NCBI RefSeq assembly: GCF_000315625.1
Contig: NW_005434522.1
Span: forward strand, 32,703-96,702
Direction of reading: 5' to 3'
DNA: 64,000 nucleotides
Source: Guillardia theta CCMP2712
Taxonomy: Eukaryota; Protista; Cryptophyta
Below, piece by piece: positions 22,981-31,638 of the stretch; position 1 is the stretch's first letter; each line of letters opens with the position of its first letter. The notes beneath the pieces are model-generated. The model was not told the DNA's origin. It ran no database searches and saw only the letters and a program-made list of their open reading frames with translations. The position numbers were made by a program, and so were the translations under genes.

Positions 22981-24804
22981 TCAAAACTTTGGCAACTTAA
23001 TGCCGTTGGAGCAAGCGTGCTTCATGTACTCTTGCTGCAGCCTCTTGGTGACAGGCCCGACTGCCGTCTTGATGGCCCTGCCGTCAATCTCCGAGACAGG
23101 CAGGACGCCGCTCATCGTCCCCGTCGTGAACGCTTCATCGCACGTGTACACCTCTGCCAAGGAGATGTTCCTCTCCTCTACTTCCATCCCCAGCTGCCTC
23201 GCCACCTTGATCACGCTGCCGCGAGTGATGCCGGGCAGGCAGCTGTCAGGTCGGGGGGTGAGGACGACTTGGTCTCGCACGATGAAGAAGTTTGTCGCGT
23301 TGGTCTCCGACACGAACCCCTGGCTATCGAGCATGAGCGCGTCGTCAACGTCAGCATTGTTGGCCTGGATCTTGGCGAGGATGTTGTTGAGGAGGTTGTT
23401 GTGGTGGATCTTGCTGTCAAGGAACGCCGGTGAGTTTCGCCGGATGCTGGAGCTGATGAGCCGCTGCGGCCTGATGCCTGACACCTTCTTGCCGGACGAG
23501 TCCATGAAGGGCTTCCATTCCGCAAGCACGATGAGGCACGAGTCCGCCTGGTTGTTCTTGGGGCTCATACCGGACGTCACCTTCTCCCCCCTGGTGAGCG
23601 TGAGCCGGATGTGCGTGTCGCTGCGCATGCCGTTGGCCTGGAGGGTCTCAAAGACCGCGCGCTTGATCTCTTCCTTCTCCGGCACGTGCTCAAACAGCAG
23701 AGCATGCGCGGAGTCCTGCAGCCGCTGTATGTGCTCGTCGAAGTCGAGGATGACGGACTTGTAAACCCGCAGCCCCTCCCACACCGCATCTCCTCCCTGC
23801 ACCGAACTGTCGAAGACGCTGACCTTCGCCTCCTCCCGGGGCTTCAGAACTCCCCCGACGTGGACCAAGATGTCTCTGTTGCGCTCGTCCGGTAGGATGG
23901 GCGAGGGCTTGAGCTGCAGGCGGGCCAGCTGATCGTACTCGGGGATGGCGCGTTCGGCCTCGACCTTGAGCTTCAGGGAGAGCTGGGAGATGTCCATGTG
24001 CTTGTGAGTCTTCATGACAGGATGGAAGCTCGTGGATGCGTGCGTGTTGTGGTACCAGTACCTCCCCCACAGTCCATCCTCAGGCCTCCCGCCCTTGGGC
24101 CAGGACAACATTCGGGGATCGAAATCGATCTCAAGCGCCGAGCACAACGCACGAAGGGTTCCCTCGGGGCGGTTGATGAGGTTGTCGTTGGATATGATGA
24201 TCGGCTTGATGTTTCGCTCCTGCAGGCGGCGAACAAGAAGCAGCTGCTCGCTGAGCCCCATGTCATCGTACGAGGTGTTGGCCTCCTGCAAAGTAGCGCT
24301 CCAAGAGGCGAGGACCTGGACGGGGTGCCGGATGAGGATCACGTTCTTGGTCTCGAAGATGAAGTCCTCATCGATCTTGGCAAAATGCTTCGCCATGTGC
24401 TTAAGGAAGAGAACGCGCTTGCCCTCCAATGGCCCCATCACGATCCTCCTCACCACTTCGTTGCCATCATTGATCTGTGCGGCCAGCACCTCCTCCCTGT
24501 AAGGCCTGAAGGCATCTGGGCGGATGTTTCGGAGGTAATGAGCATAGAGAGGCTCGTCCACCACCTGGGTGTCGCTCCGCTGAGCGAAGGAGTACATCAA
24601 GCTCGTCGAGGCGCATCGCGGCGATGACCACAAGTTTACCCTGACGAGATCCGAAACCCCCGAGACCTTGCTGGCCTTCTTCCTGCCCCTCCTCACTTGT
24701 TTCACAGCCTTTTCTCCTGCCCCTTCTGCTCCTTCTGCTCCTCCTGCTCCTCCGCTGAGCCATCGGCGAAGCGATCCCCGCCACCACACCCTGCCTCTCC
24801 ACAT
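22981..24804 (-). CDS. Sulfotransferase-like (P-loop) domain + class IV PLP aminotransferase fusion (BCAT-like protein), single exon
   Basis: 607-aa ORF. N-domain LWSSPRCASTSLMYSF...DEPLYAHYL...KHMAKH...DPRMLSWPKGGRPEDGLW..YWY; C-domain VSVFDSSVQGGDAVWEGLRVY, DSKIHHNNLLNNI (PLP Lys), ETNATN, LPGITR, FTTGT. Arg/Trp-rich N-terminus resembles a mitochondrial presequence. Confidence 0.92.
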   Translation of the reverse strand: MWRGRVWWRGSLRRWLSGGAGGAEGAEGAGEKAVKQVRRGRKKASKVSGVSDLVRVNLWSSPRCASTSLMYSFAQRSDTQVVDEPLYAHYLRNIRPDAFRPYREEVLAAQINDGNEVVRRIVMGPLEGKRVLFLKHMAKHFAKIDEDFIFETKNVILIRHPVQVLASWSATLQEANTSYDDMGLSEQLLLVRRLQERNIKPIIISNDNLINRPEGTLRALCSALEIDFDPRMLSWPKGGRPEDGLWGRYWYHNTHASTSFHPVMKTHKHMDISQLSLKLKVEAERAIPEYDQLARLQLKPSPILPDERNRDILVHVGGVLKPREEAKVSVFDSSVQGGDAVWEGLRVYKSVILDFDEHIQRLQDSAHALLFEHVPEKEEIKRAVFETLQANGMRSDTHIRLTLTRGEKVTSGMSPKNNQADSCLIVLAEWKPFMDSSGKKVSGIRPQRLISSSIRRNSPAFLDSKIHHNNLLNNILAKIQANNADVDDALMLDSQGFVSETNATNFFIVRDQVVLTPRPDSCLPGITRGSVIKVARQLGMEVEERNISLAEVYTCDEAFTTGTMSGVLPVSEIDGRAIKTAVGPVTKRLQQEYMKHACSNGIKLPKF

Positions 24805-28360: not shown

Positions 28361-29003
28361 GATCTCTTGCCTGCAATCCAAGTGAAGTCAACACCTGACT
28401 GAATACATCACTAGTCTGATGCCGCGTTTGAGCCACCATGGCCGATACTCTATGGGCAAGTTGGAGGTTGGAAGCCCTGCCTGCCTGCCTGCCTGCCTCC
28501 CTCCCTCCCTCCCTCCCTCCCTCCCTCTTCTCTCTTCCATTTCGCCACGTTCGTTTCTGTCATTTCCCGCCAAATTCTTCGTGAACTCTACCTACCCCTA
28601 CGCGATTATCTCTTAACCCTACCCCACCTTTTACTGAAATATGCATTCATTGAACCGGTTGTACATATACCCCCACCCCCTGAATTGAATCTGAACAGAA
28701 AACTTGGAACGCGAAAACCAGAATGACAAATAGGACAAACAAGTTGCGGGGGAGAGGGGGGAGAGAGGAGGGAGGGAAGGGAGAGGGAAGGGAGAGGGAA
28801 TGGTTGAGCAGGGCGGTAACATTTTGCGCTTGAGGAACCATGAGCATGTGACATCCTTCTCTCCTCTGCTTTTCCTTGTTTATTCATCATCAATGACCAT
28901 TCCTCCTCCTTCGCCATCTTCACTGTCCTCATTCTCCTCCTCCTCAGCCGCCCAGCTCTCCTGCTTTCGAACTCGTCAAGGCAACAAAATCTACCCTCGA
29001 GCA

Positions 29004-30919
29004 TCACCGTCGCCGTCGCTTCAGTCTTGGGGGTGAAGGTTGTAGGTGCTGGAGGAGGAGCAGGAGCTAGTGCTGCCGTGCTCGTCAGCCAGTCGAGGTG
29101 GAGGTGAGGCAAGAGCGAAGAGGAGCATGAACGAGGAAGGGAAGTAGATAGTACGCATTGCGGGACAAGGAGAGGGAGCAAGAATGGTGAAAGGAGTACG
29201 AGGGGAGGATAAGAAGGAGCAGCAGGAGATTGAACAGGAGCATGGCTACTTCTCTCTGGATGTTCGATGGCTTTCTCGGCGAGCAGCTCAGCGAGTGCCT
29301 GTACCAAGGGAATCAGAGGAGCACAAGGTGCCTGCCCTCCCCTACCAAAGCATCGACAGTCCATGTGGCGGCCTGGTGGTTGTCCTCGTGCTGGTCACTG
29401 CGGGGAAGAATAAGACGGCCATGGGGGCTGGAAGGGCAGGGACCTGACGACCATGGAGAAGCACTTGTTGTTGGTCAAACACTGCTTCACGGCGTTGTTC
29501 AGCAGCGCGTCCGGTTGTTTGCTGTGCAGCAGTCAGCAGATTGAGCCCCAGTAAGGATCGAGCTTGCACCCGTAGAAGGGGAATTTCTTCTTGATGCTCT
29601 CGACTATCTCCACCATACTCGCCCTCCTGTCCTTGCTTGTCGCCAGCACCTGGAGGAGAGCTGAGCCTCCTCCGAAGCCCTCCCACCTCCATGCACCTGC
29701 CCGACGATGTGGTTGAAGGATTCGACAGGCTTTTCAGGACCCCCGTCACTGCAGCAGCACATCACTTCCGATGCCGACGAGCTTCTCACTCGACCTCCCC
29801 GTAGCGTTCGCAGGGCACAAGAAGTAGAAGAAGTGAGCTCCGGGAACCTGCCAAGGGCCGTTAGGACAGGACGAGGCAGCTGGCCCGCTCACGTAGATTC
29901 TTGTCTTGCCCTTCAACAACCGCCAGGGGGGAGAGTTCTGTGTATCAGAACTCAGAGAAACATCATGATCGCCTACCCCAGCAGACTCCCACCTGATCTA
30001 CAAAGGTTGAATCGATCCAGACGCCATTCTTGCCGTAGCAGAGCAAAACCCAGCTGCGCTTGCGGAAGTCAAACATGATCTGGCAAGAAAAAGATCAGCA
30101 GGAGCTTCTCGAGTCGTCTGCTGTCACTTCAATGTGCCTCTTCGATATGTTGGTATTCCATCCCAGCCCCACAAAGCTATCGCTGACTGTATCTGAACAA
30201 ATACAGTGAGCAGATACAGCGAGCAGATACAGCAGCTTCGATATCAAATGTTCCCGACGCATCATACACCACAACAACTCGATCATTACCCGAGTCATCC
30301 TGATTGCTTGCCTGCATCTCGCCAAGTTTGCGCTTGTTCGTGCCTTTCTGCACCATCCTGGAGGAGGAGGTGAGAGCTCGGGAGGGCGATGGCTTCTGCC
30401 GACCTGTTTCGACCTAGCACGACAGAGGACGTGACGATGAAGTGCTTTAGCCTTGGCCCCTCCAACTTGGCATATGCGTATGTCTAGCAGGACAGATCAG
30501 CACAGTCGCATCAGGCAGGGGGGCCAACGGGTTTTGCGGGGATGGGCGATGCTTTCAGTCGCGATCCGAGGTCGACAGCAGGATGGCTCGACACTTTCCT
30601 TGCTTCAAGTTTCTTGATAGCGAAAGATGAGAACCGGGTCCTCCTTGCCAGCAGGCGCTCACCTTCCTCAAATCGTTGGGCTGTTGTGAATTGATCTGTG
30701 ATGCATTGATCTGAAGCATGGCTTGCGGCTGATCATGCGGTCTCTTCAGCTACGATTGTGGCTGACGGTAATGAACTCACCGTCGGAAGGATTGGCGGCC
30801 TGTTGGGCATGCTGATGTTGGGAACATTGTTCATGTGTTGTGTTGGCAAGCTAGCAAAGATTCAGAACCAACAACTTCATCACATTTCTCCTTATGTTGT
30901 CCTTTGTCGACCTCTCCAT
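29004..30919 (-). CDS. FHA-domain + forkhead (winged-helix)-like transcription factor, Fkh1/Fkh2/Fhl1/FOXK architecture; termini approximate
   Basis: Spliced product: AYAKLEGPRLKHFIVTSSVVLGRN...GLGWNTNISKRHIEIMFDFRKRSWVLLCYGKNGVWIDSTFVDQNSPPWRLLKGKTRIYVPGAHFFYFLCP (FHA: GR, SxxH, NG), then KPVESFNHIVGQVLATSKDRRASMVEIVESIKKKFPFYGKQPDALLNNAVKQCLTNNKCFSMVHEDNHQAATWTVD (forkhead pattern). Core introns are GT-AG with consistent phase. Confidence 0.82.
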
Positions 30920-31638
30920 CCATCGATACATGCCCACCTCTCTCCAATGCTCACGCCACTGCCGCCGATCCCTTCTTACTGTCTTGAGTTTCTTTTCCTT
31001 CCATCCTCCACCCTCCATCCTTTCACGTTCTCTCCCCCTCTCTCCTCCCCCTCTCTCCTCCCCTTCCTAGCGGTCTACAACATTTTTCTACCCACATGCC
31101 TACCCTACCCCCTTCAACCTGCTTTGATCGTCCTCTACCACCCCTAATTTAGCACCCCACCCAGTAATTTCCAATCTATCACCCACTATTCATATGACCT
31201 CCTGGTCTAGATACACCACCATGGTACCCCCCCATCAGAGGTACCCCTCCATCTGTCCTTCTGTTCAATCCCAGCAGACATGGCGGGAGAGCTGGATGGA
31301 GGGAGGGGGTGCGGGAGAGGAGGAGAGGAGGAGGAGGAGCGGCACAACAAGCGAAGGAACAAGAGGCGATATAGAGCGTGCGCGAGTGATGGAGAGGGTT
31401 CGGATGTATATCCATGTTGAGGGATGGATGGGAAATGCAAGCTGACGAGGACGAGGACAAAGAGGACCCCGGCTGAGAGCGAGGGAGGCAGCGAGTGAGA
31501 GAGCATGGCAGGGTGAGAGTGAGCATGACTATGAGCGTGACTCTGGGGAAGATGATGTGTGAGGCTGGTTCTGCGAGAGGCTGAGTTTGTGCTCGTGCTG
31601 ACGAGTTTAAACCCCCTTCAGCTCGGGAATCATACAAC

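Follow-up and report, generated by a model that had tools for sequence, protein, structure and literature searches.

A divergent FHA-forkhead gene with an altered recognition helix in the cryptophyte Guillardia theta

Introduction

The locus described here raises the question of whether a cryptophyte alga has a transcription factor of the forkhead (Fox) family with the FHA-forkhead architecture and, if so, where such a gene would have come from. It is a gene on the minus strand of a stretch of 64,000 nucleotides of Guillardia theta CCMP2712 (assembly GCF_000315625.1, contig NW_005434522.1, positions 32,703 to 96,702), which is called the window in this text and to which all coordinates refer. 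An earlier note, made from the letters of the window, had proposed that the gene encodes an FHA domain followed by a forkhead domain with a rewired recognition helix.

In textbook accounts, Fox factors hardly occur outside opisthokonts. Yeast Fkh1/2 and animal FOXK1/2 bind DNA through the winged helix and phosphothreonine on cofactors through the FHA domain. Plant FHA1 and FHA2 proteins (NtFHA1-type) have an Fhl1-like FHA domain and, to our knowledge, no recognised forkhead domain. The earlier note suggested that, if the FHA-forkhead architecture is of ancient origin, FHA2 could be a degenerate relic of it.

FoxJ1 homologues were found in unikonts only (Vij et al. 2012, PMC3493443). Coyle et al. 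2023 (PMC10530576) reported Fox matches in 14/824 non-opisthokont EukProt taxa and ascribed them to horizontal transfer, convergence or possible contamination; their File S2 names Teleaulax amphioxeia and Geminigera cryophila, which are cryptophytes, Rhodelphis and several heteroloboseans, and Guillardia is not listed. No published discussion of a Guillardia forkhead gene was found in the literature searched. The cryptophyte Fox matches and the Pfam annotation of GUITHDRAFT_147385, the public model of this gene, are already public. What is undescribed, as far as found, is the corrected structure of the gene, its Lys-Gln recognition helix, and the occurrence of the FHA-forkhead architecture across Cryptista, with Goniomonas included.

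Domain identity and predicted fold

The locus encodes a genuine divergent member of the Fox family with FHA-forkhead architecture, which is confirmed by the curated Pfam threshold. The protein of the public model (P0002), which lacks forkhead helix H1, matches Pfam Forkhead (PF00250) with 40.2 bits (E 3.8e-10, profile positions 13-81), and the orthologue P0003 matches it with 42.2 bits (profile positions 2-83), both above the gathering score of 27 bits. Exon 11 alone has Forkhead as its top Pfam match (E 0.0076); the other single exons, which are too short, match none. Every motif quoted in the earlier note is present in the spliced protein: AYAKLEG (aa 71-77), GR (92-93), SKRH (134-137) and NG (157-158) for the FHA domain, and KPVESF..I.Q, EIVESIKKKFPFY, NAVKQCLTNNKCF and WTVD for the forkhead. 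Against profiles of non-cryptist FHA-forkhead proteins, of which the forkhead profile is made from 81 forkhead domains, the spliced protein scores 37.7 bits for the forkhead, end to end, and 74.7 bits for the FHA domain. This last score compares with about 17 bits on the generic FHA profile, and the FHA domain is therefore specifically of the Fkh/FOXK subtype. With these scores and those of Pfam Forkhead, a chance resemblance is excluded. In 88 proteins, the columns of the FHA pocket (Gly-Arg, Ser-x-x-His and Asn-Gly) are either invariant or conserved to at least 90%. The solved structures matched by sequence are FOXH1, FOXL2, FOXN1 and FOXG1 only.

The structure was predicted with AlphaFold2 from an 88-row alignment for the orthologue P0003, which is 76% identical to the Guillardia protein and stands in for it. 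Both domains of the P0003 model have predicted local distance difference test (pLDDT) values of about 90-97 and form an FHA beta-sandwich and a forkhead in the order H1-S1-H2-H3-S2-wing-S3, with forkhead helices at 206-216, 224-234, 236-240 and 243-256 and strands at 260-263 and 276-279; pLDDT is low at the place that matches the loop in the FHA domain. The top match of Foldseek in PDB is FOXK1 on DNA (8bzm), with a template modelling (TM) score of 0.81 and a root mean square deviation of 2.1-2.2 Å, and it is followed by FOXN1, FOXK2, FOXA2 and FOXL2 (TM 0.8-0.86 for the Fox matches taken together) and by FHA domains such as Rad53 FHA1, MEK1 and others. The neighbours in the ESM Atlas are FHA and Forkhead clusters. 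A winged-helix fold, which the earlier note had suggested checking by structure, is supported together with an FHA fold by this model of the orthologue.

Gene structure and transcript support

The coding region runs from an ATG at 30834 to a TAA at 28882-28880 and has 16 exons and 15 GT-AG introns (Table 1). The gene model was first built by hand from three minus-strand frames and the sequence, with canonical GT..AG introns only. Four public runs were placed over 28400-31400, each holding about one third of the words of this stretch, as expected for spliced RNA. Transcript contigs from three studies (X1, X4 and X6) reproduce 14 of the 15 junctions and coincide with the independently built model, and every transcript junction is CT..AC on the plus strand. 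The 14 introns present in X1, X4 and X6 are 30780-30729, 30662-30613, 30528-30484, 30403-30358, 30289-30193, 30127-30080, 29992-29938, 29892-29848, 29794-29749, 29696-29650, 29569-29522, 29443-29398, 29345-29299 and 29249-29073, while intron 15 (29007-28964) is less well supported, as X6 alone shows the junction and X1 has a loose end there. The two introns at the 3' end (29249-29073 and 29007-28964) came from the transcript contigs and were added to the hand-built model. Thirteen introns have 44-55 nt, one has 97 nt and one has 177 nt. The gene is thus split by small introns, as had been read from the sequence, but the transcript junctions give 15 of them and not about a dozen, and the TGA at 29004, where the gene had been taken to end, belongs to the last intron; the coding sequence (CDS) continues to 28880.

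Exons 4-9, which encode the FHA domain, and exons 10-13, which encode the forkhead, occur together in transcript contigs that span exons 1-15, and contigs of the three studies join the two domains in one transcript, as the earlier note had predicted. The ATG is preceded by an in-frame stop at a distance of 9 codons, and the orthologue P0003, which is Hanusia-like, begins at the same Met. The locus recurs with 100% identity in DNA runs as well as in the transcript assemblies from several studies.

Intron 14 is mostly spliced out and sometimes retained, since one X1 contig is unspliced over 29043-29279 with a depth of 27 vs 66-77 for the spliced form. The transcript-derived JGI protein P0001 also reads through this intron, and a protein made with the intron retained would carry 59 more residues, rich in Pro, Ser and Leu, behind the forkhead domain. 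At the last intron, the acceptor (28961-28964) is a tandem AG...CAG with an alternative site 3 nt downstream (28961/28960); X6 uses the upstream AG and keeps a Gln codon, and this Gln is absent from P0001 and from P0003.

Low-complexity tracts bracket the gene: directly beyond its 3' end the plus strand has a GGGAGAGG-like run of purines (28745-28803), and the pyrimidine complement is found upstream of its 5' end (31030-31070). Positions 28746-28803 were skipped as a repeat in the read placement.

Table 1. Coordinates of the Guillardia FHA-forkhead gene and of its parts in the window
Feature	Position	Strand	Remarks
Complete CDS	28880..30834	-	ATG to TAA, 16 exons, 353 aa
Exon 1, coding part	30781..30834	-	Junction 30728/30781 in X1, X4 and X6; contigs extend to 30852
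Exon 2	30663..30728	-	Start of N-terminal motif NDLRKKLEARK (aa 36-46, runs on into exon 3), invariant in cryptophyte orthologues
Exon 3	30529..30612	-	Junctions 30612/30663 and 30483/30529; absent from public model
Exon 4	30404..30483	-	FHA lead-in AYAKLEG and GR motif
Exon 5	30290..30357	-	Low-confidence loop inserted in the FHA domain; basic KRK stretch, aa 103-105 (30335-30327)
Exon 6	30128..30192	-	FHA SxxH motif, SKRH aa 134-137; Ser and His invariant in 88 sequences
Exon 7	29993..30079	-	FHA NG motif, GKNG aa 155-158; phase-0 intron after it
Exon 8	29893..29937	-	Transcript junctions; absent from public model
Exon 9	29795..29847	-	End of the FHA domain, FFYFLCP
Exon 10	29697..29748	-	Forkhead helix H1 (KPVESFNHIVGQ); public model has intron sequence instead
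Exon 11	29570..29649	-	End of forkhead H1, strand S1, helix H2 (EIVESIKKKFPFY)
Exon 12	29444..29521	-	Forkhead recognition helix H3 and strand S2
Recognition-helix core NAVKQCL	29476..29496	-	aa 254-260; canonical form NSIRHNL
Exon 13	29346..29397	-	Wing 1 and strand S3 (TWTVD)
Exon 14	29250..29298	-	Helix after the forkhead domain (ALAELLAEKAIEH); helix predicted at the matching place in P0003
Intron 14	29073..29249	-	177 nt, in frame, stop-free; junction 29072/29250 in X1, X4 and X6
Exon 15	29008..29072	-	Pro/Ala/Thr-rich linker
Exon 16	28880..28963	-	Acidic tail, conserved C-terminal MVIDDE, TAA; junction 28963/29008 in X6
FHA domain, Fkh/FOXK subtype	29812..30480	-	aa 70-195, split by introns
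Forkhead (winged-helix) domain	29349..29732	-	aa 207-287, split by introns

Recognition helix

The replacement of the canonical helix core by NAVKQCL, which had been noticed in the sequence, holds in the forkhead alignment of the 88 two-domain proteins. The core is NAVKQCL in Guillardia, NSVKQCL in the Hanusia-like protein and SSIRHCL or SSVRHCL in other cryptists. The central base-contacting pair has Arg in 86/88 proteins and His in 86/88, and Lys-Gln is found only in Guillardia and its Hanusia-like orthologue, which also have Leu in place of the Trp that precedes the pair. The Cys after the pair is present in all six cryptist rows and in none of the other rows, and is therefore a lineage signature. 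The Fox signature Asn-x-x-Arg-His-x-x-Ser reads Asn-Ala-Val-Lys-Gln-Cys-Leu-Thr in Guillardia; as the other cryptist orthologues keep Arg-His, Lys-Gln is a derived state inside the family and is no evidence against membership. By this comparison of sequences, the changed helix is real, derived and confined to the Guillardia/Hanusia-like sub-lineage. The Guillardia target sequence is likely to differ from RYAAAYA, because Arg-His is changed to Lys-Gln and Trp to Leu in the base-reading helix.

The same replacements, which are found in this lineage only (2/88), could also mean that the forkhead of the Guillardia and Hanusia-like proteins is no longer sequence-specific and would be a non-specific chromatin-binding or protein-docking module, with the FHA domain carrying the main function. 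The Guillardia forkhead has a net charge of +1 (range 1 to 8, median +5) and an acidic wing 1, which both could mean weak DNA binding and therefore make a weakened or lost specific binding a live rival to a new specificity. Between the two species, moreover, the forkhead has diverged more than the FHA domain (69% vs 86.5% identity), and its Pfam score is half that of other cryptists (40-42 vs 68-84 bits). However, the VKQCL core is identical in both species, the helix has retained its first Asn, bases can be hydrogen-bonded by Lys as well as by Gln, and the P0003 fold, with pLDDT >90, superposes on DNA-bound FOXK1 at 2.1-2.2 Å. The charge of +1 is found also in Willaertia, whose helix is canonical. 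We consider the loss of specificity doubtful, and a changed target sequence is the reading kept here.

Orthologues and other relatives

The closest complete relative is P0003, a complete MMETSP open reading frame (ORF), which is 75.7% identical to the Guillardia protein overall (86.5% in the FHA domain and 69.1% in the forkhead) and collinear with the RNA-based model; over 27 residues it agrees with P0005, a named fragment from Hanusia phi. Word-based searches found P0003, the Hanusia phi fragment, the environmental proteins P0004, P0007, P0008, P0009 and P0010, and a chytrid FHA-forkhead factor. The motif NDLRKKLEARK is common to the environmental proteins, MVIDDE is common to P0003, P0007 and the environmental locus L007, and the KRK of the FHA loop is invariant in the alignment of cryptophyte orthologues (A2). 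The environmental genes, whose metagenome contigs reach 12.6 kb, are split by 1-3 introns vs 15 in Guillardia. The position and phase 0 of intron 7 are the same as those of the one intron of L007, which is weak evidence of relationship, and the two introns of L011 are at other places than Guillardia introns. Apart from the gene itself, the environmental contigs L007-L011 showed no synteny with the Guillardia locus. The environmental orthologues are probably cryptophytes.

An exhaustive profile search gave 7,796 matches with E <= 0.001, 767 with E <= 1e-10 and 19 with E <= 1e-30, and organism names were obtained for 20 of these matches. In the plastid-less cryptomonad Goniomonas avonlea, P0200 has both domains over the Pfam cut-offs, with 68.4 bits for Forkhead and 26.8 bits for FHA. 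Willaertia magna (Heterolobosea) and four relatives form one clade, and three of these five are on contigs of 250-350 kb. Other named matches are Rhodelphis marinus, Pigoraptor, Ichthyophonus, Tigriopus FOXK1, Mycotypha and Choanephora. Among the listed non-cryptist matches with FHA as their best stretch, nearly all have at least two matched stretches.

The members of the cryptist family (P0003; the environmental P0004, P0007, P0032, P0008 and P0010; Goniomonas P0200) are true orthologues with collinear domains, and the Cys of RHCL/KQCL is common to the six cryptist rows aligned. They differ from the Guillardia protein, except for the Hanusia-like one, in that they keep Arg-His and reach the higher Forkhead scores given above. 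Teleaulax and Geminigera are assigned to this family by the coordinates in File S2 of Coyle et al. 2023.

Three further groups of sequences were met in these searches. P0176 (P0032 cluster, NCBI MGB1595774.1) is a cryptophyte-like FHA-forkhead fragment of 275 aa, whose database title is 'MAG: FHA domain-containing protein, partial [Promethearchaeia archaeon]'. Metagenome contigs of eukaryote-like character, up to 13 kb long, encode the same or nearly the same protein, and P0176 is most likely from a eukaryotic contig mis-binned into an Asgard archaeal MAG. P0067 (MMETSP) is an ORF of 677 aa with an N-terminal Tsr1 G-like/AARP2CN ribosome-biogenesis region fused to an FHA-forkhead, which adjoins the cryptist clade (92/79) and may be a chimeric transcript. 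P0040, P0041, P0042 and P0046 have 994-1758 aa, with 4-8 tandem diverged forkhead domains each, no FHA domain and highly variable recognition helices.

Comparison with known FHA-forkhead proteins

Animal FOXK1 and FOXK2 have, like the Guillardia protein, an N-terminal FHA domain with an AYAKLEG-type lead-in and then a forkhead, and they keep the residues of the phosphothreonine pocket; FOXK1 (8bzm) is also the best structural match. The Guillardia protein differs from them in being much shorter (353 aa), in its own NDLRKKLEARK and MVIDDE motifs, in a 25-aa basic/acidic loop inside the FHA domain, in the helix NAVKQCL vs NSIRHNL, and in belonging to a cryptist clade of its own. Fungal Fkh1/Fkh2-type proteins ('fork-head transcriptional regulator 2') and Fhl1 share the FHA-forkhead architecture, and named fungal proteins are among the best non-cryptist matches (P0006 of a chytrid, P0050 of Mycotypha and P0052 of Choanephora), but the fungal rows form a separate clade (100/98) and all of them keep Arg-His. 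The heterolobosean proteins (Willaertia magna KAL9650008.1, P0053 group) and Rhodelphis marinus P006623 also have both domains over the Pfam cut-offs and branch outside the block that holds the named opisthokonts; their helix is, however, canonical or near-canonical, and they do not group with the cryptists. For Rhodelphis, the protein is known from a transcriptome alone, and it may be a contaminant.

Phylogeny, age and origin

A concatenated tree of the FHA and forkhead domains (88 rows, 182 columns) was made with IQ-TREE under LG+C20+F+G4. Guillardia groups with the Hanusia-like protein (100/99), then with the environmental proteins (100/95), with Goniomonas (98/85) and with P0067 (92/79). 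Rhodelphis, the heterolobosean clade (100/100) and the cryptists are all outside a 75-row block (84/56) that holds every named opisthokont, and most rows of this block carry no organism label. The fungal clade has 46 rows. As the cryptists are a separate clade (98/85), placed neither inside animal FOXK nor inside the fungal Fkh/Fhl1 clades, the tree indicates that the protein is of the same architecture and superfamily as FOXK/Fkh, yet is no strict-sense orthologue of either.

Orthologues are present in the Hanusia-like relative, in environmental sequences and in Goniomonas, so the gene is older than the cryptomonad radiation and is no contamination. By this distribution and the tree, it predates the Goniomonas/cryptophyte split and is at least as old as the cryptomonad ancestor. 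Contamination was named by Coyle et al. 2023 as a possible source of non-opisthokont Fox matches, and a contaminating or wrongly assembled sequence would make this no algal gene at all. For the present locus we hold this to be next to impossible, as it lies in the middle of a 144-kb Guillardia scaffold among ordinary nuclear genes, has 15 short GT-AG introns, recurs without mismatch in DNA runs and transcripts of several studies, and has orthologues in independent cryptomonad data sets.

Convergence is another explanation, by which the cryptist gene would be an independent fusion of a resident FHA domain and a forkhead that came to resemble Fkh/FOXK. Domain shuffling is common, and the single-domain trees are poorly resolved and differ in where they place the cryptists. 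This fusion is nevertheless improbable, given an FHA domain that shares the Fkh/FOXK subtype (74.7 bits vs about 17 on the generic profile) and the AYAKLEG lead-in, and given that nearly all listed non-cryptist matches with FHA as best stretch have at least two matched stretches, with a constant domain order.

For the deeper origin, the trees fit vertical descent and ancient transfer alike. Since large heterolobosean contigs and Rhodelphis carry this architecture too, we slightly favour vertical descent from an FHA-forkhead ancestor older than the opisthokonts. A transfer would have come from an early opisthokont, fungus-like or holozoan, before the Goniomonas/cryptophyte split, and would have been followed by gain of host-type introns and fast divergence, with separate transfers to Heterolobosea and to Rhodelphis. 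The spread outside opisthokonts is patchy, as in the 14/824 taxa of Coyle et al. 2023 (PMC10530576), and opisthokonts (chytrid, Mucoromycota and Pigoraptor) supply the closest named outgroup matches. Long stem branches lead to the cryptists, the FHA-only tree puts cryptophytes with the FOXK pair, and the approximately unbiased (AU) test finds the cryptists compatible with a position as sister to the 46-row fungal clade (p 0.218). In contrast, the AU test marginally rejects a clade of the cryptists with the chytrid pair (p 0.03), and the best concatenated tree keeps the cryptists outside the 75-row block (84/56). At least three independent transfers of one two-domain module would be required, the gene has 15 host-type introns, and there is no nameable donor lineage. 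Ancient transfer is a serious possibility, which we hold with somewhat less than even confidence.

The descent from a pre-opisthokont ancestor can be extended to a wider proposal, in which all Fox proteins would go back to an FHA-forkhead form. This form would have existed at or close to the last eukaryotic common ancestor, in an ancestor shared by Opisthokonta, Cryptista, Discoba (Heterolobosea) and Archaeplastida (Rhodelphis), and would have been lost many times; Guillardia and the Hanusia-like species would then have evolved the Lys-Gln helix with a new DNA specificity. In this complete form the proposal is tentative and rather unlikely.

Public gene model, host genome and surroundings

A protein search with the stop-free frame over exons 14-15 identified the locus as GUITHDRAFT_147385 of Guillardia theta CCMP2712, a hypothetical protein of 300 aa (P0002). 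The probable cryptophyte of the earlier note is thereby named, and a fungal or animal scaffold is excluded. GUITHDRAFT_147385 has the UniRef name 'FHA domain-containing' and a precomputed PF00250 match. Compared with the transcripts, it is wrong in four places, which are the skipping of exon 3 (30612-30529), the skipping of exon 8 (29937-29893), the use of intron sequence for exon 10 (29748-29697) and the missing of the last intron; it ends in read-through sequence, without the acidic MVIDDE tail.

The genome searched has 87,145,349 bases in 669 contigs, and no second forkhead locus was detected in it by six-frame searches, which work exon by exon, so a very diverged intron-split forkhead copy could escape them. 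The whole-genome six-frame search with Pfam Forkhead did not recover the present locus either, because its exons are too short. The gene is the only forkhead-family gene detectable in the G. theta nuclear genome and is apparently single-copy. A Forkhead match on another contig (L001 = G000:C138:49580-52717, E 0.41) was rejected as noise, as Pfam describes it as a Cys-rich EGF/ephrin-receptor-like ORF.

The neighbours of the gene on its scaffold are a sulfotransferase/aminotransferase-IV fusion ORF and a P-type ATPase. The fusion ORF (22981-24804, minus strand) is intronless, has 607 aa, and combines two domains, sulfotransferase (PF19798, 127 bits) and class IV aminotransferase (PF01063, 180 bits).

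Proposed function and significance

We consider it highly probable that the locus is an expressed 16-exon gene for a nuclear regulator of 353 aa, which has an N-terminal helix, an FHA domain of Fkh/FOXK type with a basic loop, a forkhead, an extra helix, a Pro/Ala-rich linker and an acidic MVIDDE tail. By analogy with yeast Fkh1/2 and FOXK1/2, the forkhead domain would place the protein on DNA and the FHA domain, in which the pocket Arg, Ser, His and Asn are all retained, would bind phosphothreonine on partner proteins. Kinase signalling, most plausibly of cell cycle or growth, would set which cofactors are recruited. The acidic tail with MVIDDE may serve as an activation or docking segment, and the KRK in the FHA loop (aa 103-105) is a possible nuclear localisation signal. 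In the Guillardia/Hanusia lineage, the base-reading helix would have changed from the cryptist SSIRHCL to NAVKQCL or NSVKQCL.

Several points weigh against this reading. The generic Pfam FHA profile gives 16.5 bits for Guillardia and 17.7 bits for the Hanusia-like protein, below the cut-off of 20.7 bits, because of the loop insertion; the other cryptists have 26.8-34.8 bits. The fold was predicted for P0003, whose forkhead is 69% identical, and the Guillardia protein is represented by this proxy. Expression looks low in the one raw-read run, with 7 reads from about 6% of the run. Goniomonas groups with the cryptophytes only in the concatenated tree, the single-domain trees being poorly resolved, and the low charge of the forkhead and its acidic wing belong here too. 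DNA binding, phosphopeptide binding and localisation are taken from homologous proteins.

In practical terms the gain is more modest, and consists of the four errors located in the public model and the wrong Asgard archaeal label of one environmental orthologue. For the Fox family, the locus is a clean counter-example to an opisthokont restriction, as it is intron-rich, expressed and apparently single-copy, with orthologues down to the plastid-less Goniomonas and an architecture like that of heteroloboseans. The age of the family and of the phospho-dependent FHA-forkhead design becomes testable with labelled, taxon-rich phylogenies, and if the reading of an ancestor near the last eukaryotic common ancestor is true, the view of Fox as an opisthokont invention would be overturned. 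The natural replacement of Arg-His, which is conserved in two species, is a natural experiment on the change of DNA specificity in forkhead domains.

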